This document shows, piece by piece, positions 3 to 59,086 of a stretch of 64,000 nucleotides of DNA; position 1 is the stretch's first letter, and the number at the start of each line of letters is the position of its first letter. Below the pieces are notes generated by a model. The model saw only the letters and a list, made by a program, of their open reading frames with translations. It searched no databases and was not told the DNA's origin. The position numbers were made by a program, and so were the translations under genes. The stretch is from the sequence record MW749003.1. The stretch is one strand, 5' to 3'.

Positions 3-3000
3 ATGTATGATTATTCTACTAGAAACCTAAGTTTTATTAAGATCTGGAAGTTTCTAAAAGATCAAGGTATAAAAAATAATAAATTCTTTTTAAAATTAAA
101 TGATGAAACATTACAGGGTGTTGATCCATATGATCCAAATTTAACTGATGAACAAAAGGTAAGAATACAGGTTGAAGTAATGACTAACTTTTGGTATTTC
201 TTAAGGGAAGTAGTAAGAATTCCTGAATCGGGCGGTTCTATTCATTTCATGTTACACAGAGCCAATCTTGGTCAAATGTTTCTTATGGAAAATAATATTG
301 ATATGATTGAAATATTACCTCGTCAGAATGGAAAAACTATCGGTGCAGTATGTCGTTATATATGGGTATATCATTGGGCTACCAAAAATACTCATATGAT
401 TTTTAGTAATAAACAATACGCCGATTCTCAATTAAATATTAAACGTTTTAATGATATAACTGAATTATTACCTAGTTATTTAAAGACTCATTTAGACCCT
501 AAAAAAGATACAAATAACTTAGCACAAATTTCATGTGCAAAAAACAATAATAAAATTGATGCAATGAGTACTGCTAGGACTGTTACTGACGCTGACAAAC
601 TGGGTTAACTAACTATGGCTCAGTATAAACTCCTTTAATTTCTGGAACGTCCTTCCAAGGATAATCAGAAGCTAAGACTTTTAAAAGTAAAGTTCAACGA
701 CTATCGAAACCGACTTATTAGATCGTTGTGATAACGCTAGATAAGGATAAGGGAGTAGAGTAGAATACAAGCTATAGGTATTCAAAAAGGGGAGCACCGT
801 ATTTAGGTGAAGATATAGTCTCATCTCTATGGTAACATAGAGCAGTTCATAAGAGAACGGTATAGGCGTAGCGAACCTATATGAAGGTAACTTGCGTGGT
901 TGTACAGTACCAATTATATGGTTAAATTTTTAGCCCATTATAATAGTGATATTATAATGAATCCTTCTTAACTGCTGGAACATCCTTTTAGGACAATCAG
1001 CATCCAAGCATTGTTATATAAATAACAATGAAGGTTCAACGACTATCGAAACCGACTTATCAGATCGTTGTGATAATGCTAGATAAGGATAAGGGAGTAG
1101 AGTACAACTCAAGCGATTGGAGTTGGAAATGGAAGGCATCTCAATGAGATGAAGATATAGTCTCATCTTCATGGTAACATGGAGCAGTTCATAAGAGAAC
1201 GGTATAGGCGTAGCGAATCTATATGAAGATAAATGATGATGAATTTGCATTTTTAAAATATAATGATACGGTATACGCTAAACTGGTGCAAACTGGCGTA
1301 TTAAAACTCTCTTAACTGCTGGAAACTCCTAAAGTCTTTAGTACCAAAGTGTAATAATCTAAAGGATATATGGACAATCAGCATCCAAGCATTGTTATAA
1401 ATAACAATGAAGGTTCAACGACTATCGAAAAATATAATTTGTATTATATTGAGTAGAGTACTTTCAAGCGAAAGGAAAAGGAGAGCATGATGAAGGTATT
1501 AAATACTGGAGTGAAGATATAGTCTCATCTCTATGGAAACATAGAGCAGTTCATAAGAGAACGCATTAGACGTAGCGAATCTAATGGAAGGTAATTATGA
1601 GTGCTGCACCAGCACTATCAAAAGCATCAGAAGCCGCACAGCGTAATGGTACTCCTTACGGAAAATTAATTACAACAACTCCTAAACTATTGGGCAATAC
1701 ATTAGTAATAATGTAATTGAATCTTCCTTAACTGCTGGAAACTCCTATATGGACAATCAGCATCCAAGCATTGTTGTTTATAACAATGAAGGTTCAACGA
1801 CTATCGAAACCACTCTAACAGATCGTTGTGATAACGCTAGTTAGAAGGAAGGGAGTAGAGTACAGCCTAAGTGATTGAGGTTGGAAAAGGGAAGCATCTC
1901 AATGAGATGAAGATATAGTCTCATCTTCATGGCAACATGAAGCAGTTCATAAGAGAACGCATTAGATGTAGCGAATCTAATGGAAGATAAATGAATGATC
2001 TTGATACAGAAATGGGTAAATATTGTAAGGGTATGATTGATGATGCATGTCCATTTGATGAAGCTTGGTATGATTGGGATATTGATGAAATTAAAAAATA
2101 TATTGAACAGAACTCTCGAAATGACTTTGTTTATTTAGTATTTAATTATAAAGAGTTAGGACATGATGACAAATGGTATCAAAAACAATGTCGTCAGCTC
2201 AATAATGATTTATTAAAAATTAAACGTGAAATATTATTGGAATGGACATTGGCTAACGATACTTCACCTTTTTCAGAGGAACAATTAGCAGAAATTGGAC
2301 AACATGCAGGTGAACCTATTGGTAAGTTTTATGTAATGAAAAGATATAAATTTGAAATTTTCAGTGAAATGCGAAATATATTTAAAAAATCATGGCTAAT
2401 CGGTATAGATATTGGGGCAGGTTTGAATCGAGATTTTACAGTGATATCTATTATTGATCCTAAAGATATGGTTCAAAAAGCAGTATTTAGAAGTAATAAT
2501 ATATCTTTGCCCGATTTAAAAGATTTGGTTATACACCTAGTATTAGAATTTTGTCCTAATGGTGTCATTATTCCAGAACGAAATAACTTAGGTATCTCTT
2601 TAATACAAGATCTACTACGTTCAGAAGTAGCTAATAACTTATATTATGAAGTTAGAGAAGTAAAGGGAGAAAAGAAAGTTGATGACCCAAAAAGATCATC
2701 TAAAAAGACAGTTAAGACTAAAACAAGAGTTTATGGGGTTACTACTAGTAAAGATAGTCGGGATATAATGATCAATGAGATTCTTAGTAATGCAGTTAAT
2801 GATACTCCACATGTGTTTACAAGTAAATATATTTTTGAAGAATTAAGAACATTAGAAAGAAATAAGAAAGGAAAGATTGAACATAGGGATGGAGGTCATG
2901 ATGATACATTATTCTCATGGCTAGTGGCATGCTATGCTTTCTTATATGGAAATAATATAAATAAATTTGTTAAAGTCATCAGTGATGGCGATAATAATGA

Positions 3001-22782: not shown

Positions 22783-25700
22783 TTATTCCCTAGTTAGAGA
22801 ATAGATTGCTTGTATTGCTTCATTCCCAATTTGGCGGGAGTTTCGACCCATTTGATCTAACATATTTTTCTTTTCCCATATTAGTCGTTCTGCTTCTTCA
22901 TTAGCTTCTTTACTAAATACTCCACGTAGAGATACTGTATCACCCAAAATCTTCCAGTAGATTCGCTACATCTACTGCGTTCTCTTATGAACTGCTCTAT
23001 ATTACTATAGAGATGAGACTATATCTTCACAATATAATTGTGCCCTCCGTTTCCATTTAAAGAGGAATTATAACCTTATTACGGAATACCTCTACCGCTT
23101 GGCTGTACTCTACTCCCTTCCATCTAACTAGCGTTATCACAGCGATCTGTTAGAGTGGTTTCGATAGTCGTTGAACCTTCATCTTTAAATGAATTAAAGA
23201 CGCTTGGATGCTGATTGTCCATATAGGATTTTCCAGCAGTTAAAAGGGTTTTACTACGACAGTAGATTATTATCTTTTATAGGTAAATACTAAATTACCA
23301 CAATCCCATATTCTTTTAAATCTAGTTTTATCCATGATTTCAAATTCAGTACTATTATCACTATATAATTTTGGAAATTTCTTTTTGAGATTAGACTTTC
23401 TATAATTAAATCTATGGAATCGTTGAGTTTTTTCAACATTAACATACCAATAGTTGGGTTTACTAATATGACTTAATTCAAATTTATTATTGATATAAAC
23501 ATTACCATCTGACCAGCGTCTATCTGCATAGGTTATTAATTCTTTCCACTCATAATTTCTCTCGAAGTATTTGAGAAGTTTACTAAAAGCACCTATTACT
23601 CTATAGTCCATATCGGTAGCGAATCTTGATAGTTCAAAAATATTATCAACACTATTTCTACCTAGACTTTTTCTAAGTTTACTAAAAGTCATAACCGCTA
23701 CAAGTTCATCGCCATCTTCTTTTGGAAGCCATAAGCCTAATTTAATTGATGACAAATCTTTTCCCTGAATGTGATTTCTTTCTAGGAATTCATTTTTAAA
23801 ATTGTTATCAATTACTTCTACATAACAATTTCTAGCGTATATTTTAGTAGAATTATTTAATTTTAGTAAGTGTCTTATTTTTTCTTTTACTATGAGAGGT
23901 TTGTTAACCCATTCGTCTTCAAAAATTTGAATTAGTCTAATCCCTTTACTATTACATTTTTCTAATTTTTCTAAATGATAGTTTCTTTTCTTCCCCATTT
24001 GCTCTGAATGCCAATATAAACCATTAAATTCAAAAGCAATTTTTTTGGAAGGAATAAATATATCAATCTCTTTACCTTCAAGTAATTTCCTGTCATTACA
24101 TATGACTTTATCTACAACTAATCCTTTAATAAAAGAAGATAGTTCTTTTTCCATTTTTGATGAACTTTTAAATGCACAATATGGACATCTATTTCCATTA
24201 TTAAAGTTTTTAATTGTAACTTCATACTCCTTATTACAACTATGATGTAACAACCTAATCTTCGTTTTATTATTACGATATTCACCTAATAATGAATACT
24301 CATTATTTGTAACTAAGCTAATTTTTCTTTTAACCTCATCAGTAGTTAGCCTTCTTTTACCAGAACATTGAGGACATCTATTTTTCAAAGCATAATAAGG
24401 AGTAGTCTTCCATTCATAATTACAGTCATTACATCTGAAAAGTATTTTGGTATCGATATTGATATATTTCTCAAGACTTATAAGTCTTCCATTAGTCTTT
24501 TCTTTTAATTCCTTCTTAAACTCATCATTGCTTTTTAATCTTGATTTACCTTTATTAATATCAGCACACTGAGGACATCTACTACCATTATGAAATATAT
24601 CAGGTCTAACCTCATATATATTTCCACATAGTTCATGCCTTAATTTGATTTTAGTCTTATTGTTAATATATTCATTGGATAAAACTGTATAGGTATTGTT
24701 AGTTAGTAATTTAACTTCTTCTTTGAATTCATCCAGTGTCTTTTTGCGTGGCATACACTAATACCTCCAAATAATTAATAATTATTTGTTTATTTGACAC
24801 TGTATTCCCTTAAAAAGAAATAATATTGAATTTATCGTAGTCCCCGCCTAAAGCCTTTAAATAACCATTATAAGGAATTACTGTATCAACAAAAAGTTCA
24901 TCCTCTGCGGGATAGTCAGGGTATATAACAGGATAATCAGGTAAGTATCTATCTTCCAGCTTTTGAGGTCGTGTTTCTTTTGTTGAGAGAATTCTAATTT
25001 TACTTGGATAAATATTCTATAGTGATAGGTAAAGATTTGATATAATCTCCTCTTTTTCCCCCACTTCACACCCTACGTGCGACTTTCACCGCATAAGGCG
25101 TTCCATCAAAATATATTATTTTGACTATGACCCTTCGCTCCAATGGAGTTACCCATCTTCATAACTACTATGGTCTGCTGACTTTCTATATAAGAGTATC
25201 AACTATAATTTCTCTTATATAGAATCTCTGACGTTCCGTAAATGATAGTATAGCTATAACTTAGATGCCTTCTGCCCTATATAAACTTCTATTGTACCAC
25301 ACTTTACAATCAGGTCGTTCACCAGTACCGTATTACTAAACCCTGAATTTATATAGTATAAAAAGGTTCGTGTTCCTCATCATATTATAGCACCGCCCAC
25401 CCTATCTATTAGTATTATAGCATTACTAATATTCAGATGACTTCACCTAACTTCATACAAATATTTTATATAGTTTAAAATAGATGCATGTAGGAGTATT
25501 AGCGACAAGTCTTCAATGAAAATGGTCATATCTTTTACTTGTTCTCATTTACAGTTTAGATTATAAAATCTACTCCATTTCACATTAAATGCTTATAGGA
25601 GAACGTCACATACGATACTGCTCTATTGGATATCTTGTTACATATACATGTTTATCTTTGGTAATATCAACTGCCGCAATGAATAGAATATCAGTTAATG

Positions 25701-31175: not shown

Positions 31176-31356
31176 TTTTCGGATCATAGAAATATGAATG
31201 AGAAGGATTACTATTAATGTAATCAGATTTGAAAGTGAAGAATAATTTTAAATTATCCTTAAGATCTTTAATAAGATCTTAAGGATACTTATATGCCGTT
31301 TACATATAATACTTAGTTATTTTTAAGATATTAAAAAACATAAAAAGTGATGTAAA

Positions 31357-31420: not shown

Positions 31421-33316
31421 TTGGAAAAGACCTATAATTTAAATGATATTCTATTATCAAATGAGTATGAAAAAATTAAAGAGGATATCAAAGAAGAAAT
31501 AATTAATGATATGGCATCTAAGAAAGTAGAGTATAGCAATACTTCTGAATTTGCTAAAAATGATTTTCTTAAAGATGAATTCATTGATTTAGTTGTTGAT
31601 GGAGAAACATATGAAATTACATATGGAAATCTAATCACATTATTAATTGTTGCAAGACCATTTAATCACTTTAAAGTACCAATGACTGAAGATTTATTAT
31701 TTGATCTATCTGATTTAAAAGAATACCAAAATTATTATACTACATTGCTAGAACATTTTAGTTACAGTAATGAAATTAAATCTATTATTAAAGATGTTAT
31801 TAGTGAGTTAGCAATTTTCTCTGGGGATATTAACGTAACATTTGGTAATACAGTTTCTATTAAATCACTTATTGATTTGGGAAATAAAGTAAAGAGATTT
31901 AGAGAACTATTACATTATCGTTTACCAAATGATGAGGCATTAGAGTTTAATGATATTGAGGCTATTATTAAAAAGAATTTAGATGAAATTATGAAAATTC
32001 TTTCTGAAACTGATAATATGCTAAGATATTACATTGATTCAGGTGCTGGTATTAACTCAAAACAATTTGGTCAAGTATTATCATTAGTAGGTTCTAAACC
32101 GGATTTATTTGGTAAAATTATTCCTTATCCAATTAATACTAGTTTCCTAAGAGGATTAGATGTACGGTCTTTCTATATTAATGCTTTAGGGGCAAGAAAA
32201 GCTTTAATCACAAACTATCAACAAGTAAGAAACTCTGGCTATCTAACAAGAAAAATTAGTATGTTATTGATGGATACAAAATTAATTGATTTAGATGATT
32301 GTGGAAGCCATGAAAACAACTATCTTTCAATTAATGTTGAGAATAAAGATGTTCTAAAAAGATTCTCTAAAAGAAGTTATTTAAATGATAATGGTGAATT
32401 AGTTGAAATTGATATTAATGATGAAAGTCTAATTGGACAGGTAATAAAAATTCCTTCCCCAACTACTTGTGCGTCTAATGAAGGCGTTTGTCGTAAATGT
32501 TATGGTAAATTATTTGATATCAATAAAGATCTAAATATTGGTATGATTGCAGTTCTACTATTAACAGATCCATTAACTCAGCGTTTATTAAGTGCAAAAC
32601 ACTTACTAGAGACTCGGTCTTCTAAGATCGATTGGGGAACTAATTTTGAAGAGAACTTTATCGTAAACAGAAACTTAATTTATCCTAAAGTTTATAATGG
32701 AACGGTTATTATTAAAGAAGATGATTTTAAAGAAGATGAGGAAACAGAAGAACAAGTATTTGATACATTTACTTTAAAAAGTGGTAATAGATTTATTTCT
32801 ATTAGTTCACCAATGAGATTATTCCTAAATAAAGACCTTAAGAAACAACTTGATGAAAGCTTTTATAATATAGAAGAAATGCAATTTGAAATTCCATTAA
32901 ATAAGCTTGATGAAGGCGATAGTTTTGCAACATTCATCATGGATAATAACGAATTATCAAAACCATTAAGGGAAATTAAAGATCTTATTGAAACTAATAA
33001 ATATATTAAAGATCATAATGTTAATGAAGTGGTAAACTATTTTATTTACCTCTTAAATGAATCAGGTATCAATATTCAGTCTGTTCATTCAGAGTTAATC
33101 ATTAGAGAAATGATGAAACTAGATGATTCAGATAGAACACAATTTAAAAATGATAAAATGCCGGATTATGAAATCTTCCGTATTACAGATGCTAATTTAA
33201 AGGGAGATAGTCTATCAAGATCATTATTATTTGAGCAAGTTAAGAAACAGCTAACTACACTAGATTATGATACATTTAATAAAACAAAATCTTCAATTTT
33301 AGATAAACTACTTTAA
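31421..33316 (+). CDS. Non-virion RNAP beta' C-terminal subunit (AR9 gp154 ortholog)
   Basis: Bridge helix GARKALI...SGYLTRK, Zn site C...SPTTC...VCRKCYG, trigger loop PLTQRLLSAKH. The 631-aa sequence matches my recollection of AR9 gp154 almost exactly. Confidence 0.93.
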   Translation: MEKTYNLNDILLSNEYEKIKEDIKEEIINDMASKKVEYSNTSEFAKNDFLKDEFIDLVVDGETYEITYGNLITLLIVARPFNHFKVPMTEDLLFDLSDLKEYQNYYTTLLEHFSYSNEIKSIIKDVISELAIFSGDINVTFGNTVSIKSLIDLGNKVKRFRELLHYRLPNDEALEFNDIEAIIKKNLDEIMKILSETDNMLRYYIDSGAGINSKQFGQVLSLVGSKPDLFGKIIPYPINTSFLRGLDVRSFYINALGARKALITNYQQVRNSGYLTRKISMLLMDTKLIDLDDCGSHENNYLSINVENKDVLKRFSKRSYLNDNGELVEIDINDESLIGQVIKIPSPTTCASNEGVCRKCYGKLFDINKDLNIGMIAVLLLTDPLTQRLLSAKHLLETRSSKIDWGTNFEENFIVNRNLIYPKVYNGTVIIKEDDFKEDEETEEQVFDTFTLKSGNRFISISSPMRLFLNKDLKKQLDESFYNIEEMQFEIPLNKLDEGDSFATFIMDNNELSKPLREIKDLIETNKYIKDHNVNEVVNYFIYLLNESGINIQSVHSELIIREMMKLDDSDRTQFKNDKMPDYEIFRITDANLKGDSLSRSLLFEQVKKQLTTLDYDTFNKTKSSILDKLL

Positions 33317-49983: not shown

Positions 49984-50030
49984 AAAATAAAGGATAGAGA
50001 TAATTTAATCTCTATCCTTTATTTTTTTTT
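49984..50030. terminator. Bidirectional terminator
   Basis: AAGGATAGAGAT/ATCTCTATCCTT with A/T tails between convergent genes. Confidence 0.75.
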
Positions 50031-51759
50031 TTGTATACTTAAAAACTAAATTTCCACAATCCCAAATTCTATCATAACCAGCTTCTCTCATAATTTGAAT
50101 TTCTGTTTTATCATTACTATAAATTTCTGGAAATAATTCTTTTAATCTTTGTTTTCTATAGTTGTATCTATGTGAAAGACTCAATTTATTTTTATTAAAA
50201 TACCAATAATTTGGCTGAGAATTATGCATAAAGTGAAAGTTATTTTTATAATATACATTTCCTTCTGACCATCTTAAATCAGCATATGTTATGATGTTAT
50301 TCCAATCATAATTCTTTTTAAAATAACTGAATAATTTTCCAAAACTACCTATTACATTATAGTCTCTTTCTGTAGCAAATCTACTTAATTCATAGTCATA
50401 TTTATTCCCTTTTTGCCCTAAGCTAACTCTAGGTTTACAGAATGTCATTACTGCTACTAACTCATCACCCTCATTCCTTGGATACCATAGTCCCAGTTTA
50501 ATAGTAGAGTTATCAGATCCCTGAATATGATTTTTATCTAAAAATTCTCTTTTCACATTATTCTGAATTTCTTTTATATAACATTTTCTAGCATATATTT
50601 TTTCTCCATTATTTAAACCTAAAATATGTTTTATCTTTCCCTTTATAAGTTCTTTATTATCAATCCACTCATTCTCAAATAAATGAATTAATCTTATACC
50701 TTTTTCATTACATTTTTTCAATTTATTTAGATGGTAGTTTCTACCTTTTCCTTGAGATTCACCATGCCAATATAAACCATTATATTCAATTGCTATTTTC
50801 TTTGAAGGTATATAAATATCCAGTTCTAAACCTTCAAGTATTTTTCTGTCTGATAGAATTACATTAGTGCTATTGGGGAGAATTTGTTTAATATAATCAT
50901 ATAATTCAATCTCATCTTTTGAATTATGTTTCTTTAGTTGACATCTAGGACAATCTCTTTTAACTTTTTTACCTCTTGAATTACCATGTAAAATATCGAC
51001 CGGTCTAACCTTCCAAGAATAGCCACATGAATGCTCAATAACTATTGGAGTTTTATTATTAATATATCTACTCTTAATTGTATAATCATTACTATTAAAT
51101 ATTCTATAAAAATCTTCTTTAAAACCATTAGATCCTTTATTTTTTGGATTTTTATTACATATATTACACCTTTTTCTTTTTAGGAAATTAGTTGGTGTAA
51201 TAAAGAAATTATGAGAATCACTAGTATTGTGTCTCATCTCAATTTTATCTTGAGAGCTAATATATTCTCCTAATACAGTATATTCATCTCCTACTAAATC
51301 ATACACTTCTTTAATAAACATTTCAGTAGTCTTTGTCTTTTTCCTTTTTATTAGTTTCTTAGTACAATCAGGACATCTTGAACCCTTACTGAGAAAGTCA
51401 TTAGGTCTTTTTTTAAATTCCTTATTACAGATGTTATGTCTAAGTAATACTAGTTCAGAACTATTAATATATTCTCCTAATACAGTATATTCATCCCCTA
51501 CTAATTCATACACTTCTTTAATAAACATTTCAGTAGTCTTATTTTTTCTTTTAGATATTCTTTCTGATTTATGTAAAGGACATCTATTACCTGCATTTAA
51601 AAAGCCATTTGGTGTGACATAGTATTCATGACTGCATTTTTCATGTTTCATTTTTATTTTATTATTAGTTCCAGTATATTCTCCTAATACAGTATATTCA
51701 TCCCCTACTAATTCATACACTTCTTTAATAAACATTTCAGTAGTCTTCTTTTTAGGCAA
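50005..51759 (-). CDS. Free-standing homing-endonuclease-like protein: Zn-finger array + Vsr/EDxHD-like nuclease + Mom-like GNAT (likely TTG start 51759)
   Basis: Paralog of 23270-24754 (ELDIYIPSKKIAIEYNGLYWH; ELSRFAT...ITYADLRWSEGNVY). It lies outside any intron, after the beta gene stop. The start was chosen by the AAAGGA RBS and similarity to MPRKKT. Confidence 0.8.
   Translation of the reverse strand: MPKKKTTEMFIKEVYELVGDEYTVLGEYTGTNNKIKMKHEKCSHEYYVTPNGFLNAGNRCPLHKSERISKRKNKTTEMFIKEVYELVGDEYTVLGEYINSSELVLLRHNICNKEFKKRPNDFLSKGSRCPDCTKKLIKRKKTKTTEMFIKEVYDLVGDEYTVLGEYISSQDKIEMRHNTSDSHNFFITPTNFLKRKRCNICNKNPKNKGSNGFKEDFYRIFNSNDYTIKSRYINNKTPIVIEHSCGYSWKVRPVDILHGNSRGKKVKRDCPRCQLKKHNSKDEIELYDYIKQILPNSTNVILSDRKILEGLELDIYIPSKKIAIEYNGLYWHGESQGKGRNYHLNKLKKCNEKGIRLIHLFENEWIDNKELIKGKIKHILGLNNGEKIYARKCYIKEIQNNVKREFLDKNHIQGSDNSTIKLGLWYPRNEGDELVAVMTFCKPRVSLGQKGNKYDYELSRFATERDYNVIGSFGKLFSYFKKNYDWNNIITYADLRWSEGNVYYKNNFHFMHNSQPNYWYFNKNKLSLSHRYNYRKQRLKELFPEIYSNDKTEIQIMREAGYDRIWDCGNLVFKYTKKKIKDRD
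51261..51747. repeat. Three 73-bp near-identical direct repeats, 207-bp period (51261, 51468, 51675)
   Basis: Each encodes KTTEMFIKEVY(E/D)LVGDEYTVLGEY. Two copies are identical; the third differs at 2 positions. Confidence 0.9.
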
Positions 51760-51780
51760 AACAATCATCCTTTTATATAA

Positions 51781-51820
51781 ATTGGATTTCAACTATTATT
51801 TTGTTTAGTTGAAATCCAAT
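51781..51820 (-). promoter_or_regulatory. Late promoter AACA-N6-TA forming the loop of a perfect 15-bp inverted repeat
   Basis: Arms ATTGGATTTCAACTA and TAGTTGAAATCCAAT; the loop 51796-51805 is AACAAAATAA on the minus strand. Confidence 0.65.
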
Positions 51821-51838: not shown

Positions 51839-54800
51839 TTATTCTGAATATATTTTACCAATTTCTCGTTTAAGATGTACTAATGCTTTGTTTAAATATA
51901 GAGCATTATAAATATCAACGGTCATGCGTGAAACAATACTCAATGGACTCATAATAGCTTCAATATTCTCATCTGGATCATTCTCACTAAAAGGCTCTTG
52001 ATCTTTAGGAATAACATCAGATACAATTGTTTTAAGTGCTGTATAATACGTAATCTTATCTCCAATACCAAGTTCATCATCATACTCAATATAAATCTCA
52101 ATGAGTAGTCCGTCTACTTCAGTACCTTTAATTTTCTCACCTGATTGCTTTTGAATAGGTTTAAGATTAACAGAAGTCAGATCATTAGTAACAGACTTAA
52201 TCTTATCTTCTTTCTTCTTACTATCTTTAATATAGTTCTTCAGAATCTTTTGTACTGAAGGAGAAAACTCACTGATATCTTTATTGTAGTACATTACAAC
52301 ATCTACAATCTTACCAGTATATTTAGAACTTACTTTGTTCTTAGATAACTCATTAATAGTCTCATTAAAGTCATCTCCTAGTTTATCTAAGAGTTGGTTG
52401 AGTGATTTATCTTCAAAGGAGTTTTCAAAGATAATCAATGGATCACCAGTCTTAACCATATCGCCTTTCTTAACAATAAAGTCAATGTTTGAGTTAACTC
52501 CAAGAGCAAGTTCTTTCTTCATAGTAATTTTAGTAGATAGGTCTTGAGATAAGCTTTCTGTAATAATACTACTATCTTCATAAGTGTAATCTGCGCTTGC
52601 TAGTGCTACTTTACAAAGCTTCCCTGTAGTATACGTGATATCATCTTTCTTATCGCCAAGGAAGTAACTTGGATTCTTCGCTAGGATATCATCTTTTTTG
52701 AATTTCTCTCCTACTTTGATAATGAGTTCTTTACGATTAGCAATGTAAACAATTATCTTCCACCAAATTCGCTAGTTTTGGTGCGCCCTCTAACGGACTG
52801 CTCCATGTTACCATGAAGTTGAGACTATATCTTCAAAGTTCCCTGTTTCCCAGTATACATAAATAAAAGTATACCAGATTTCATCTCAGAAACCTGCCAC
52901 CAATCGCTTGTGGGGTACTCTACTCATCTTTATTAATAAGATTTTCGATAGTCGTTGAACGTTCTCTATTAGTTTAATAGAGCTTCGCTTCTGATTATCC
53001 TTTTAATAAGGACTTCCCAGAAATTAAAGGAATTTAACGTGAGCCTTTAAACCCACCATTACTATTCTTACTCATATGCTCGGAGAGATCAATGACGTCT
53101 TTCTTACCATCATTATAACGAACGACAGCTAGCTCATGTTCTTCATCTATGGACTCTAGAACTCCATCTTTTTTTGCTCTAAACACAAAGTCGTCACTTA
53201 GAATATAAGCAACAGTCTTCTCTACACCACTACCAAATAGAGGTTTAGATTGCTTTGTGGTAGGAATGATCGTTAACTTCCATTAGATTCGCTACGTCTA
53301 ATGCGTTCTCTTATGAACTGCTCTATATTTCTATAGAGACGAGACTATATCACTATCCTTAATAATTAAGGATAACTCCCATTTCCATTTAAGGGATTCT
53401 CACCCACTCCAAACACTTGAGCCGTACTCCTATTGCGGAATTTCACCGCTACTCACAATCCTAAGATTGCTTTCGGATAGTCGTTGAACTTTATTCAAAA
53501 GTTTTCTTTAAGTATTCTTCTAGATTACTTAACTGTGTATAATTGAATCTGAATAGTTTATAACCCTTTCTTTTACAATACTCATTTTTTAGATTATCAC
53601 GGAATTGTATATCCTCTAAGCCTTCTTCTCCACCAAAAAAATCAGATGGCTTAAAATGTTGCTTACCATCATATTCAACTAATATTTTAGTTCCGTCCTC
53701 ATCTTCAAAATAGAAATCAAATCGTAATCTTCTTCCTGTTTTTGGATTAACTAAGTCTGAAAATGATTTTTCAATTTCAAAGTAGATATTATTCTGGTTG
53801 AAATAATTAGTAATAATTTGAATCCCACTAGAATTTCTTCCAATTCCATTACTACAATGAGGACATCTGTACCCTAAAATAAAGTTATTTGGCTTTATCT
53901 TAAAAGTTTTTTCACATTTTCCATGATATAATGTAACATGTTTGTGAGCATGGGTATATTCATTTGTTAGAGAATATTCATTACCAACCAATTCATAAAG
54001 TTTTTCTTTAAATGTCTCTGTAGTTCTTTTTTTAGTTTTAGCACAATTTGGACAACGATAACCAGAAAGAAAATTTACAGGTAATACAGAATATTCATTA
54101 CCGCATTTGTTATGTCTCATCTTAACGTGAGTCATATTGTTTATATATTCAGAAGTAGGTTTATATTCATTACCGACCAATTCTTCAACTTTTTTTCTAA
54201 AATCAGAATCGGTTCTTTTTTTATTTTTAGCACAATTTGGACAACGATCTCCTCGTCTGATAAACTGATATGGTTGAACCTTATATTCATTACCACATTT
54301 ATTATGTCTAAATAAAATTTTAGTATGCTGTGCTAAAAATCTTCCTAATACCACATATTCATCACCAGTTAATTCTTTTACTTTCTTTACAACTTCCATA
54401 TGTTTTTTATTCAATAAACAAATTGGACATTTAGTTACTTTATTTTTCTTAAAGAAACTATCTGGTCTCATTTCAAATGTACTATCGCATACTTTATGAT
54501 AAAATATAGCATTTATAGTTGATGATATATATTCTCTAACTTCAAATTCATTATTATATACATCTTTTAATCTTCTAGAATAAACTTTACTTAACATATT
54601 ACACCCTCCGACAAACAGTTGTAATAATATGTTAAATTATTTAAAAACTATTTTGAATATTAGCTGCTGATTCTCCAATTCTATTAGTTTTCAAACCTTC
54701 ACGCTTATTATTTCTAATTACGTTGTGGTCTAATAGACTCTAAGGAATTTCCAGCAATTAGAGAGTTTATCTAATAGTATTACTACTATTAGGCACGAAT

Positions 54801-57800
54801 CATGCTTTTGTTGGGTACTCTGCATGCCTACTCGTGGAGGATCAGCATGCCTTACTGTAAAGGAGTTCAATAATTCTGCTGGACCATAGATATTTGTCGT
54901 GTTATTTTTTGTATTAGGATTGGTGTCTAAGAATCCTCGTGTGTTTTTAAATGCTGGATCAAAAGTTAACTGTCTAACCCATTATCTTCATATAGGTTCG
55001 CTACACCTATACCGTTCTCTTATGAACTGCTCCATGTTACCATGAAGATGAGACTATATCTTTATCTAGTCAAAAAAAAAGAAAGGAGATGACTAGATAT
55101 CTCCCATTTCCATTTAAGGGATTCTCACCCACTCCAATCGCTTGAGCCGTACTCCTATTGTGTGTTAACCACTAAAGGATAGTCGTTGAACGTTACTCTC
55201 GTTATAATTAAAAATAATTTATAAAATTATTATTTTATTTTTTCCATAATAGTAGCTCTCCTTTTTAACTTACTACTATTATAATATATTTAACGAGAGT
55301 CTTCGATACGGATTGTCCTATTATTAGGAGTTTCCCGTAGTTAGAGAGATTTTATCATTATATATCACTATATAAGGGGGCAGTTTAATTCACCCCAACT
55401 TTCATTATCTTCCACTAGATTCGCTACATCTAATGCGTTCTCTTATGAACTGCTCTATGTTTCCATAGAGATGAGACTATATCATCATCCTATTAGGATG
55501 CCTCCCATTTCCAACTCCAATCGCTTGAGTTGTACTCTACTCCCTTCCACTAACTAGCGTTATCACAACGATTTGTTAGAGTGGTTTCGATAGTCGTTGA
55601 ACCTTACTCTAATGAGTCTTGGATGCTGATTGTCCTTAAAGGATTTTCCAGCAGTTAAAGAGGTTTACTTATAATATTTCTATTATAAGGGACTATTATA
55701 AATCTTGTCTGGAAATTCAAGAATTATAATAATTCAATCCGAGTCGGGCGTTGACATTGCCATGATTCCACGCATACTAGGGTCATAAGCTCGAATATCA
55801 GTTGTATAAGCATCCGTTTTCCTTCATATAGGTTCGCTACACCTATACCGTTCCTTAGAACTGCTCTAAGTTTCCTTAGAGACGAGACTATATCATCACT
55901 TAAAAAGTGCCTCCCATTTCCAGCCTCAATTGCTTAGGCTGTACTCTACTCCCTTCCTACTAACTAGCGTTATCACAACGATCTGTTAAAGTGGTTTCGA
56001 TAGTCGTTGAACCTTTACCTTATTACAAATAATTTGTAACTTAGGTACTTGGTTGCTTATGATTACCCAATCCTTTAAATTTTTACCATACCTGAATTGT
56101 TATATTCAGCCATCTATTATGTTTCCATATAGATTTGGTATTAAAGGCTCTAAGGGTTTTCCAGCAGTTAAAGAGGTTTTAATTGGACTAAAACACTTTA
56201 ATCCAAGTTCCTTCCTGAAAGCCCCTTGTAAGTAGCCGCACCACCCTTTTCAATTTCCAAAGAAGGGTTAAGGACACTATATTCATCGACAGTAGGTGAA
56301 TTCATTAATGTCTTTAATAGAATATCCTGTGGAACAGACATCTTAATAGGATTACCAGCTTTCAGTGTATCCTTATACGTTTTAAATGAATCTGCCAAGA
56401 TTTTATATAGATAAGCATTTACTTGCTCAGTACCACGGATTCGATATGAATTCATATCATTCAGTGGACTATAGCTCATATCTTCCAATAAGGTATTCGC
56501 ATACAACAATATGTCATAGATATTCTCAGGTAATTCTAACTGTTTCAGCACATCTAATGTGATAGGATCAACCATTAGAGATAGAGTATTGTGAAGACCT
56601 TTACCCATATTTCTACTACCGAACATCTCATAGAAAGTCTCAATATAAGGATCTTTAGAGTTCATTTCTTCAAATGCATACTCTTCAGTAGCCATAGTAC
56701 TTAGACCACTTAATAATAGGGAATTTCTCAATAAAGAATTATTATAATATAGGTATCCATCTTTAAAACGGATCTTATCATAGTCATCATCAATTGTAAT
56801 TCTCTTATTTTTAGTATCAAAGCTATATTCAATATTATATCTTTCTAATAAATCTTCTAATCCTAATTCATATCCAAGAAGAACCACTAGAGGGATCATT
56901 CTATTATTAATACGAACTCGGTTATATGCTAGAGACTTAGAATTACTTAAAGAAGATAATTTTTTATAAGCTTCCTCACTAAGTGAAGTGACAACAACTT
57001 TAATAATGAGTTCTGAAAGACTCATATCAGTATTTTCTTGTTTCTTATTATTAATCAGATAAACTCTTTTACTTGAACGATTAAGAGCAATAACGTTTTC
57101 ATTATCTTTTGTATGACCGATTGGTAAGAATTGTTTATCATCAATATTAATCTTAGCAAGCTTAGCCATATTATCAAGATCACTTTTCAATAAATCTTCT
57201 ACTTCTTTTTGACTGAACATAAGTTTATATTCATCATTCTCTAAGCTTAGAAGGAAAGAAGAAATCTCATTATATTCAAGAGTTGTTTCATAACCCTCAT
57301 TAATTGTTAGAGCGTTACCTAGGCGATAATTAAACTTCTTACCTGATACCTTAAATTCATTTAAATCCATACCAAAGAGTTTCTTAAGTTTCTCAGTTTT
57401 ATGAGATAATTTAGAACCAAAGCGCATGACAAAAAACTTATTGTAGTTAGTAGTAATCTGAACTTCATCAGGTTTTGTTTTTACAATGGGCAAAGATAGA
57501 ATTTGCTTAAGAATTAATTTTTTACCACCATTAATATTCATAAACCTACCATCTCTGATAATAGGATAATCAAATTTAACAGTATGCTTTACATTACGAT
57601 CATCTTGGAAAGTAACAGTATAAGTTAATTTTTTTGATAAATCAGTAGATGTGTCTTCTGTTTTAATATCACTTACAAATAATTTAACATCGCTATCTCC
57701 ATTAAATGATGAAAGAACTGCAACTAAGTCTTTTTTCATCTGTTTTTCAAAGTAGCTCATATCAAAATCTTTGAGATTTGAATATCTAGTTTCTTCTTGA

Positions 57801-58996
57801 ATAACATTTGTATTGGTAATTGGCTTTCGGTCAATACTTGTTGATTTAAAGTCATCAATAATATCTTGAATATTAATATCATCAAGAGTAACTTGTTTTT
57901 GTTTTTCTTTTAGACGTTCAAGAGTCTTTCTCTGTTTAATTTCATCTCCACCAGTAGACTGAAGCTCTTTAAGAGTTGAAATATCGGCTTTTAATTCTTT
58001 ACTGTTATTTAAAATATCAATGATTTCATCTTCACTTTTATCAAGAATATCTTCATCACTTGAATCAATAGCTTTTTCAATATCATCACCAATCTTATCA
58101 GTAACTTCAATTGCACTACTAGATAGTTTTGTATTTCCATCGATTTGGAAATTACTTAATAATTTTTCTTTAACTCTTTCAGATTTTTCTTTTACTAATG
58201 CATCTCTCTTGTTTTCTGTTTCTTGAGTTGCCTCTTCTTTACCTAAAGGTTTTTCATCATTATTAGTCCTCTGATGGTTTGCTGTTTTAATGAGAACATT
58301 TAATGCATTAAGGAATCTATTTGCAAGAAGATTAGAAAGTTCATCATTAATATTGAATTTAATAAATGTATTATTAACTGTAGTATAAAAAATAAAGTCT
58401 ACATTCTTAAGCTCTTTCTTCTGTTCCTCTGTTAACAACTTTCTTTTAATTGCCATATAGATATAAGCAAAAGGTGTTCTTGCATTATTTAAGTCAAAGA
58501 ATGATGGATCAAGAACATTGTCAGGAACAGGAATTGCTACTGCTTTATTCTCATATGATGCGCCCTCTTTAATTTTAGATATAAGAAAATCAAAGTACAT
58601 TTCAACTCGTTTTCTTCCACGAACTTTAATTTCTACTTCATTCTCAAGATGCTCGTTTGTAATATCATAGATCAAGTTAAGATCATTATAATTAGTTAAG
58701 GCACGTTTAGTATAAATAATACTAGAACATTTTGCTTTTACCTCATCATAATATTTCTTTTGATCTACAATAATTCTTTTATTCTTCTGAATGGTATTGA
58801 ATGCTCTTGGAATATATACTCCTCTAAAAAAAGAAGGACTGAATATATTAGAATTAATAAAATCAAATATCTCACTTTGATTATTTCCTGAAAAGAAAAT
58901 CAAATTTGAATTACGGTCATTTTTCCTTTTTTTAATGGATGAAAGTTTTATATTAGAGTACACTCTCAATTCCTTGAGATTATCAAGATAAAACAA
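51839..58996 (-). CDS. Multisubunit RNAP beta subunit, probably virion RNAP, spliced: complement(join(51839..52749,53051..53270,54802..54979,55392..55402,55737..55814,56201..58996)), 1397 aa
   Basis: The spliced frame (4194 nt) reads GLSGRNLD|DAYTTDIRAYDPSMRG...STPDSD|KVGV|VRQLTFD...GMQSTQQKH|IIPT...SNGG|FYIANR...GDKITYYTALKTIVS...PLSIVSRM, giving beta conserved regions in order. Late promoter at 59022-59033. Confidence 0.92.
52750..53050 (-). mobile_element. Group I intron beta-I5 (301 nt, ORF-less)
   Basis: P1 GGGU/GCUC; P4 variant UUCUG/CAGAA as in terL-I1; R and S elements; terminal G at 52750. Confidence 0.9.
53271..54801 (-). mobile_element. Group I intron beta-I4 (1531 nt) with a homing endonuclease gene in the P6 region
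   Basis: P1 GCAU/GUGC. The ORF lies between the Q element (CAGCAG) and the R element (UUCAACGACUA). Terminal G at 53271. Confidence 0.92.
53491..54597 (-). CDS. Intron-encoded homing endonuclease: four Zn-finger repeats + Vsr/EDxHD-like nuclease, no GNAT domain
   Basis: HxxC...RCPxC repeats; LRFDFY...VEYDGKQH; own late promoter at 54622-54633. Confidence 0.82.
   Translation of the reverse strand: MLSKVYSRRLKDVYNNEFEVREYISSTINAIFYHKVCDSTFEMRPDSFFKKNKVTKCPICLLNKKHMEVVKKVKELTGDEYVVLGRFLAQHTKILFRHNKCGNEYKVQPYQFIRRGDRCPNCAKNKKRTDSDFRKKVEELVGNEYKPTSEYINNMTHVKMRHNKCGNEYSVLPVNFLSGYRCPNCAKTKKRTTETFKEKLYELVGNEYSLTNEYTHAHKHVTLYHGKCEKTFKIKPNNFILGYRCPHCSNGIGRNSSGIQIITNYFNQNNIYFEIEKSFSDLVNPKTGRRLRFDFYFEDEDGTKILVEYDGKQHFKPSDFFGGEEGLEDIQFRDNLKNEYCKRKGYKLFRFNYTQLSNLEEYLKKTFE
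54980..55391 (-). mobile_element. Group I intron beta-I3 (412 nt) with a vestigial endonuclease expression cassette
   Basis: P1 GGGGU/GCCCC; P4 variant UACGG/CCGUA; R and S elements; terminal G at 54980. Confidence 0.9.
55403..55736 (-). mobile_element. Group I intron beta-I2 (334 nt, ORF-less)
   Basis: P1 GGAU/GUCC; P4, R and S elements; terminal G at 55403. Confidence 0.9.
55815..56200 (-). mobile_element. Group I intron beta-I1 (386 nt, ORF-less)
   Basis: P1 UUGGAU/GUCCAA; P4, R and S elements; terminal G at 55815. Confidence 0.92.
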
Positions 58997-59086
58997 TTAT
59001 ACCCACTTCCTTTCTTAACAATATCTATTTGTTTACATAAAAAATTAAAAATAAAAAGATAAGGTTTTATCCTTATCTTTTATTAT

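Follow-up and report, generated by a model that had tools for sequence, protein, structure and literature searches.

The gene for the N-terminal fragment of the beta subunit of the virion RNA polymerase (RNAP) in Bacillus phage vB_BspM_Internexus is divided into six exons by five group I introns. We confirmed this structure in a stretch of 64,000 nucleotides (nt), bases 1-64000 of record MW749003.1, referred to below as the window. The phage belongs to the genus Takahashivirus, which also takes in AR9, PBS1, vB_BsuM-Goe21 (Goe21) and BpSp. The gene lies on the minus strand between 58996 and 51839, and this interval matches the record at 100% identity with unchanged coordinates. We consider it very probable that it is a late gene whose transcript is spliced, and that its introns are selfish elements standing at different stages of the homing cycle. 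Its parts, with lengths in nt and amino acids (aa) and any open reading frame (ORF), are as follows.

58996-56201, minus strand: exon 1, 2796 nt, residues 1-932, with a TTG start and ending in ...GLSGRNLD (from the list of ORFs)
56200-55815, minus strand: intron 1, 386 nt, group I, ORF-less
55814-55737, minus strand: exon 2, 78 nt, residues 933-958, DAYTTDIRAYDPSMRGIMAMSTPDSD (located by tblastn and collinear with uninterrupted homologues)
55736-55403, minus strand: intron 2, 334 nt, group I, ORF-less
55402-55392, minus strand: exon 3, an 11-nt micro-exon, AAAGTTGGGGT, encoding K-V-G plus two bases of the following codon
55391-54980, minus strand: intron 3, 412 nt, group I, with the remnant of an HNH-AP2 endonuclease gene
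54979-54802, minus strand: exon 4, 178 nt, residues 962-1021
54801-53271, minus strand: intron 4, 1531 nt, group I, with a 368-aa ORF at 54597-53491, a predicted homing endonuclease
53270-53051, minus strand: exon 5, 220 nt, residues 1022-1095
53050-52750, minus strand: intron 5, 301 nt, group I, ORF-less
52749-51839, minus strand: exon 6, 911 nt including the stop, residues 1095-1397, with YEDSS and GDK...SRM motifs and Pfam Rpb2_6

Joined together, the exons form a coding sequence of 4194 nt that is translated into 1397 aa with no internal stop. The original prediction had listed exons of 2796, 78, 11, 178, 220 and 911 nt, sizes that were reproduced exactly by boundaries derived independently. 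It had also claimed five group I introns in one gene with an endonuclease in one only, and a long ORF is indeed present in intron 4 alone. A search with the exon 1 protein found 104 relatives, about 45 of which are uninterrupted at ~1370-1430 aa, one of them exactly 1397 aa long. When the spliced Internexus protein was aligned with 12 uninterrupted metagenomic homologues, no gap appeared at any of the five junctions, and the KVG encoded by exon 3 was conserved in the uninterrupted homologues. The junctions (marked by slashes) sit in the most conserved blocks of the protein: GxN-L-D/D-A-Y, TPDSD/KVG/VVRQL, MQSTQQKH/IIP and NSNGGF/Y.

The intervening sequences match the Rfam family RF00028 far beyond chance. 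Four of them exceeded its gathering score of 50 (E 1e-16 to 6e-27): intron 1 with 70.2 bits (55864-56243), intron 2 with 104.4 (55453-55711), intron 3 with 74.4 (55030-55401) and intron 5 with 76.3 (52801-53085). The 3′ half of intron 4 (53321-53550), directly 3′ of the 368-aa ORF, scored 45.4 bits (E 3e-9); the score is low because the 1.1-kb ORF splits the ribozyme core, and the ORF-less AR9 counterpart of this intron reaches 76.6 bits. Pairings that can be read in intron 4 include P3 (ACUCUCU/GGGAGU), P4 (UGCUG/CAGCA) and elements from P7 to P9.2. All five 5′ exons end in a U able to form a U·G pair within a P1 helix of 4-6 bp with a guide near the 5′ end of the intron (UUGGAU/GUCCAA in intron 1, GGAU/GUCC in intron 2, GGGGU/GCCCC in intron 3, GCAU/GUGC in intron 4 and GUGGGU/GCUCAC in intron 5), and a terminal G is found in 5/5 introns. 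P1 is just 4 bp long in introns 2 and 4, and in intron 2 it spans a long loop.

In the Rfam alignments of introns 1-4, an unmodelled insertion of ~80 nt lies between P7 and the 3′ strand of P3, the place where the phage-type subgroup IA is defined by its extra P7.1/P7.2 helices. Each intron runs ~51 nt beyond the 3′ end of its Rfam match, in a conserved tail of the form ...CAGUUCAUAAGAGAACG-hairpin-GAAGAUAAUG with a GUAGCGAA-type loop. The stems of this hairpin vary between copies by compensatory changes (CAUUAGAU/AUCUAGUG, GUAUAGGU/ACCUAUAU, CACCAAA/UUUGGUG). The Rfam 3′ ends themselves (55864, 55453, 55030, 53321 and 52801) were rejected as intron ends, as they would break the reading frame. 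We infer that the Internexus copies self-splice, and include intron 4 because its pairings are intact and the phage is viable.

Contigs from public RNA libraries of two studies (runs X1, X2, X4 and X6) were aligned over positions 52500-56500, and all five ligated junctions, the 11-nt exon included, were present in contigs from AR9-like phages. The joint 55814/56201, which skips exactly 386 nt, was found in 4/4 runs. At the joint 54979/55737, 11 letters stood between the two sides: ACCCCAACTTT, the reverse complement of exon 3, in X1 and X4, and a one-letter variant of it in X2. One single contig of 1488 nt (record 18 of X4) passes through exon 1, 89 nt (78 + 11), exon 4 and exon 5. The joint 53264/54802, with six substituted letters, is the intron 4 junction, and record 17 of X4 joins 52747/53049 for intron 5, the same product as 52749/53051 because of a TT ambiguity. 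A loose end of the RNA contigs at 55226 runs into AR9 g190. Four Internexus introns are validated in this way through AR9 copies that are ~97-100% identical to them, and intron 4 for its exon junction only. Odd joints in the contigs (for example, 52924/55991 and 53351/55937) were discarded as cross-mapping among paralogous intron copies, not splicing.

The counterpart in AR9 is g189 (with g190), the same gene with six exons and five intron positions. Its annotation is a join of six pieces that starts and ends on the same bases as the model given here, and it carries the GenBank note 'beta subunit, N-terminus; virion RNAP subunit'. This arrangement was already published in 2016-2017 as a late gene with introns (Lavysh et al. 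2016 and 2017), and annotated; Internexus is an unannotated second instance. What is new here is the turnover of endonucleases in introns 3 and 4, the diverged tract of exon 4, and the polymorphism of the introns among near-identical phages. The comparison across AR9, PBS1 and relatives that had been suggested as a check was run, and intron presence was found to vary as follows.

Internexus: all five introns (386, 334, 412, 1531 and 301 nt)
AR9: all five introns, at the same sites
PBS1 (two records): four introns, intron 5 precisely absent
Goe21: two introns; introns 1, 2 and 5 absent, exons 1-3 fused
BpSp: four interruptions at partly different sites (~913, 960, 1011-1022 and 1100)

Exon 1 has 99.1% aa identity to AR9 and PBS1, exon 3 is 100% identical in both, and intron 5 is 100% identical to the AR9 copy; leaving aside exon 4 (see below), the other exons and the shared introns have 96-100% nt identity to AR9. 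The PBS1 and Goe21 alleles have near-identical exons and the same insertion sites wherever introns occur.

The protein is not a whole beta subunit. A profile of 29 full-length homologues aligned to bacterial beta in three blocks: residues 904-981 with ...NPL..GPGGL(S/T)RERAGFEVRDVH...ETPEGPNIGLI, residues 1001-1168 with E. coli beta 671-833, and residues 1309-1373 with bacterial GDKMAGRHGNKG...PSRMN, after which the product ends within 24 residues. The profile alignment to the PDB stops ~230 residues short of the bacterial beta C-terminus. A complete bacterial-type beta would contain Rpb2 domain 6 in full together with domain 7; here Pfam Rpb2_6 was covered just to position 272-283 of 373, and Rpb2_7 (domain 7) was absent from the product in Pfam. 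The original prediction, 'beta subunit with all C-terminal motifs', has to be corrected accordingly to an N-terminal beta fragment. The C-terminal module of beta is a separate gene, a homologue of AR9 g078 with an N-terminal HD domain, located in Internexus at ~218-221.6 kb and itself interrupted. The product belongs with the g189 family, as seen from the 99% aa identity of exon 1, the shared neighbour genes, and the end after GDK...SRM as in the 1370-1430-aa homologues.

All five introns fall within residues 932-1095 (164 codons). Intron 1 lies in GxxGxN-L-D/D, which aligns with bacterial GPGGL(S/T)RER (fork loop 2). Introns 2 and 3 flank KVG in TPDSD/KVG/VV, which aligns with ETPEGPNIGLI; intron 4 lies in QQKH/II, aligning with NMQRQ/AVP, and intron 5 in NSNGGF/Y. 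In E. coli rpoB numbering we take these sites to be approximately R540/E541, P567/N568, G570/L571, Q688/A689 and C764. By the profile alignment to bacterial beta, it is a fair description that the introns cluster in the fork-loop and active-site-proximal region, as had been proposed. A phmmer search of the PDB with the last 500 aa of exon 1 gave nothing useful, bacterial beta being reached solely with the profile of 29 homologues, and Pfam searches with single small exons gave no matches because these exons are too short.

Expression of the gene was assessed from its promoter.

59022..59033, minus strand: late-promoter motif AACA-N6-TA, homologous to the mapped AR9 P189

A 51-nt string of the AR9 g189 promoter is conserved upstream of the gene in the window, with one mismatch, and transcription is predicted to start at the A of position 59022, which leaves 26 nt ahead of the start codon. 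For AR9 g189 a late promoter was mapped, with a transcription start site at 155790 and a 26-nt leader, and the read values of the gene are 0/24/390 at 5/20/40 min (mBio 2017 supplement). By this homology, the virion RNAP beta N-fragment gene is late. Support for the promoter at 59022 comes from homology because the motif alone occurs at chance frequency (79 AACA-N6-TA observed in the window versus 84 expected). Another copy of the motif, at 54633-54622, lies 25 nt upstream of the intron-4 ORF and resembles the dedicated late promoters of AR9 g079/g146; given the chance frequency of the motif, we treat it as a lead only.

The introns differ from those of AR9 mainly in the endonuclease genes that they carry. 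In AR9 and PBS1, intron 3 has 638 nt more than in Internexus, which make up most of g190 (HNH-AP2). AR9 expresses this intron gene early, from its own promoter within the intron, whereas Internexus keeps a remnant of it: a ribosome-binding site followed by ATG GAA AAA ATA AAA TAA, a 5-codon ORF at 55247-55230 (minus strand). A degraded early-promoter box is still present at ~55292-55281, one AT short of the AR9 consensus AAATATATATTAT, and in the AR9-type RNA contigs an extra AT at 55283 completes AAATATATATTAT. The depth of AR9-type RNA over 55230-55292 was very high, up to ~4760 (run X6).

Intron 4 presents the opposite case. It is ORF-less in AR9 (353 nt), PBS1 and Goe21 (353-360 nt across the three), whereas in Internexus a 1243-nt segment with the 368-aa Vsr-like ORF replaces 65 nt of the AR9 intron (alignment breakpoints 54743 and 53500). 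Goe21 has yet another state, a 344-aa Vsr-type ORF in intron 3. The product of the Internexus ORF is predicted to be a homing endonuclease. It contains repeated treble-clef zinc-finger/CapR-like modules (Pfam DUF4379, E 4e-9, and CapR) and matches PHROG 559 (3e-83), 9084 ('homing endonuclease') and 7140 ('intron encoded nuclease'), the last two at 7e-22 and 2e-16 in its C-terminal part. The C-terminus also shows a weak match to DUF559 (E 0.0075; 16.6 bits, below the 20.6 cut-off); a phmmer search of the PDB with it gave no useful match. The ORF is paralogous to AR9 g079 (annotated cd01038 DUF559) and AR9 g147, is 34-38% identical to these two and to Goe21_02050, had no match of at least 60% identity in phage records other than Internexus, and has its nearest relative outside the genus in the Twort intron-encoded protein (37% identity). 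In its CapR and treble-clef modules, and possibly in the weakly DUF559/Vsr-like C-terminus, it resembles the CapR-like, EDxHD/Vsr-like intron homing endonucleases (Nucleic Acids Res 2025, PMC12350094). Those genes were described in beta′ introns, whereas the present one lies in a beta group I intron and is placed with them by sequence similarity.

The exon next to this ORF is also unusual. Exon 4 has 87.1% nt and 96.6% protein identity to AR9, the changes being mostly synonymous, and identity to AR9 is 83% over the first 58 nt of intron 4 (the diverged tract spans 54744-54979, minus strand). This would fit an endonuclease-bearing intron 4 that was acquired from a less closely related donor and brought adjoining exon sequence with it (co-conversion). 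Metatranscriptome contigs hold further exon-4 variants. Between AR9 and Internexus, then, intron 3 appears to have lost the HNH gene and intron 4 to have gained a Vsr-like one.

We propose the following sequence of events. Transcription from the late AACA-N6-TA promoter would produce a pre-mRNA that is spliced to the 4194-nt frame, with the 11-nt exon held between introns 2 and 3. The introns would be selfish mobile elements that entered highly conserved sequence by endonuclease-driven homing or by transposition, and that now stand at different stages of the homing cycle. Intron 4 would represent the stage with an intact Vsr/DUF559-like endonuclease gene, apparently imported with the diverged stretch of exon 4; intron 3 would have passed to loss of an HNH-AP2 gene that AR9 and PBS1 still carry; and introns 1, 2 and 5 would be the ORF-less stage, their presence varying among near-identical phages. 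Several points weigh against this account. The RNA runs are AR9-like rather than Internexus, with zero depth over the Internexus-only ORF of intron 4, and the spliced RNA was seen in assembled contigs rather than in single reads. Intron 4 falls under the Rfam gathering threshold. The nuclease domain of its ORF is recognized by a weak Pfam similarity and by family labels, and the direction of the endonuclease-gene events (loss versus gain) was read from remnants, not from a rooted phylogeny.

The same observations could, with less likelihood, have another meaning: that the cluster of introns and endonucleases is an interference-competition system that cuts the virion RNAP gene of co-infecting relatives, and that the swapping of endonucleases is an arms race. 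There is a parallel in PhiPA3 gp210, which is intron-encoded in the homologous virion RNAP subunit gene, has a 3.7-fold competitive effect (PMC11620839) and nicks PhiKZ gp178 (Birkholz et al. 2024, PMC11620839). The finding of three endonuclease states in introns 3 and 4 among phages whose exons are 97-99% identical, the mostly synonymous nature of the diverged tract in exon 4, and the free-standing endonuclease gene directly downstream would all agree with such a system. The pattern is, however, just as expected if introns simply pass through the usual homing cycle, in which they are gained, become fixed, degenerate and are lost, and the nucleus-import biology behind the PhiPA3 case is not known from AR9-like phages. 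The cleavage site, target and fitness effect of the proposed system are all putative. PhiPA3 gp211/209 is similar in that a putative group I intron with a homing endonuclease occupies a conserved site in the homologous beta-like subunit of a jumbo-phage virion RNAP. It differs in having a single intron and an HNH nickase, at a site by the conserved aspartate pair that is not among the five Internexus sites; moreover, a competitive function, putative in Internexus, has been demonstrated there. A stronger form of this idea is more speculative still: AR9-like phages that infect the same cell may compete over the 164-codon catalytic segment, where the intron-borne endonucleases and the free-standing one nearby would cut rival alleles as PhiPA3 gp210 does, ORF-less introns and the synonymous divergence of exon 4 would confer immunity, and the intron 3/4 endonuclease swap would be a recent round of the contest, not neutral decay.

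The four near-identical phages, which have 5, 5, 4 and 2 introns and show three endonuclease states, are a natural series in which rates of homing, co-conversion and loss of endonucleases could be measured for a gene whose product has to be packaged. The series could also test whether such introns confer a competitive advantage, as was once shown in a Pseudomonas jumbo phage.

The downstream endonuclease gene is the following.

50005..51792, minus strand: INTERNEXUS_65, a free-standing Hef-like homing-endonuclease gene, homologue of AR9 g188, matching PHROG 559 and 3339

AR9 g188 has its own late promoter (mBio 2017 supplement). At this position a homologue is absent from Goe21, the phage with the fewest introns. 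The INTERNEXUS_65 product may aid the ORF-less introns in trans, the correlation across four genomes being a lead only. The gene contains three near-identical direct repeats of 207 nt (marker AACATTTCAGTA at 51317, 51524 and 51731), which encode KTTEMFIKEVYELVGDEYTVLGEY zinc-finger/CapR-like modules.

A further explanation for the accumulation of introns, put forward in the original prediction, was that late genes (for virion components or packaged enzymes) tolerate or select introns and early genes exclude them. Within the window the observations behind it stand: all 11 introns are in three genes, terL (four group I), virion beta′ (one group I and one group II) and beta (five), each of which is late in AR9. 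No Rfam match falls in the early non-virion RNAP subunit gene (31421-33316; an exact early-promoter box lies at 31354) or in either of the two DNA polymerase genes. The prediction had also named the test that could overturn it, intron density in the rest of the genome, and when this was run introns were found in genes that are not late. Internexus has group I introns in the non-virion RNAP beta′ N gene (129178-129483, 84.8 bits), in the DnaB-like helicase gene at 157374-160748 (158107-158392 and 159871-160196; 81.4 and 67.4 bits) and in gyrB at 173034-175741 (174517-174902, 64.7 bits). A weak RF00028 match (169065-169256, 26.1 bits) lies inside a homing-endonuclease gene between two exonuclease fragments, and the gyrA/topoisomerase IV subunit A gene is split by ~0.8 kb (192316-193126), an insert that matched no Rfam intron family at E up to 1; the gyrA annotation of AR9 includes two introns. 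In AR9, joins are annotated for gyrA (g044) and for non-virion beta′ N (g270), two genes whose promoters were mapped as early and whose transcripts are present at 5 min (mBio 2017 supplement), and AR9 g007 (DnaB) is likewise detectable at 5 min. An earlier comparative paper had already listed the AR9 gyrA and non-virion beta′ N introns. The AR9 positions matching the Internexus DnaB and gyrB introns had no RF00028 match; therefore, either Internexus gained these replication-gene introns or AR9 lost them.

Counted by host gene, with the AR9 classes of 125 late and 166 other genes, 6 late versus 4-5 non-late genes carry introns, with no enrichment (Fisher p 0.3-0.5). A count per intron does favour late genes (~16-17 of ~21-24; nominal binomial p ~0.002-0.005), and the genes with many introns, terL with 4 and beta with 5, are late. 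This skew, however, is due to these two genes, and introns within one gene are not independent events. The inference is contradicted at the level of genes, and we consider a general preference of introns for late genes improbable. The analysis removes a tempting generalisation and does not reveal a new kind of element.

The ten group I introns of the window (596-1942, plus strand; 22995-23306, minus; 52750-56200, minus) are paralogues of a single family and share 70-96% identity over 80-310 nt. In their 3′ tails the similarity is mosaic: over 86 nt, beta intron 3 matches a terL intron at 96.5%, and the last 80-90 nt are 93-96% identical between some copies (also beta introns 2 and 4 with another terL intron), versus 72-84% in the cores. 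This suggests exchange or recombination between intron copies. The family crosses host genera, because the core of intron 2 (55436-55553) is 85.7% identical over ~118 nt to an unannotated stretch of the 44.7-kb Staphylococcus phage StB12. In virion beta′ N, a group II intron at 25019-25559 (minus strand; 80.5 bits for D1-D4 and 55.1 bits for D5/D6) adjoins a group I intron with a Hef-like endonuclease ORF; for AR9 and PBS1, a description of this arrangement is already in print (Nucleic Acids Res 2025).

The beta segment is also interrupted in more distant relatives. Metagenomic homologue ORFs that end early lose similarity at a few recurring places, residues ~913-914, 920-939, 952-966, 1003-1016 and 1094-1103. 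A 236-kb metagenomic contig carries RF00028 introns at the site of Internexus intron 1 and at ~1011-1018 (the latter with a NUMOD4/HNH ORF), and a 270-kb contig has one at ~1014-1016. There is precedent for clustered group I introns in one conserved gene with exon number varying between close relatives; among the records compared here, no denser case was seen than the present one, where 164 codons hold five introns and two of these introns enclose an 11-nt exon.

The GenBank record of Internexus gives three unconnected 'RNA polymerase beta subunit' coding sequences (66, 67 and 70) with no join, and labels the intron-4 ORF 'hypothetical protein'. Division of an RNAP subunit among several genes is known from jumbo phages, yet we see next to no likelihood that these pieces are a broken gene without function or are translated into separate polypeptides. 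The annotated pieces omit exons 2, 3 and 4 with their invariant motifs, and the DNA between the exons is made up of group I ribozyme cores; moreover, RNA contigs from AR9-type phages are spliced, and uninterrupted homologues of the same length (1397 aa) exist. The practical value of the present analysis lies in a corrected annotation that restores exons 2-4 and the invariant catalytic-region motifs they encode. A 60-aa 'hypothetical protein', INTERNEXUS_69 (56053-56235, plus strand), runs antisense over the border of exon 1 and intron 1, within the group I ribozyme core, and is most likely a spurious gene call.

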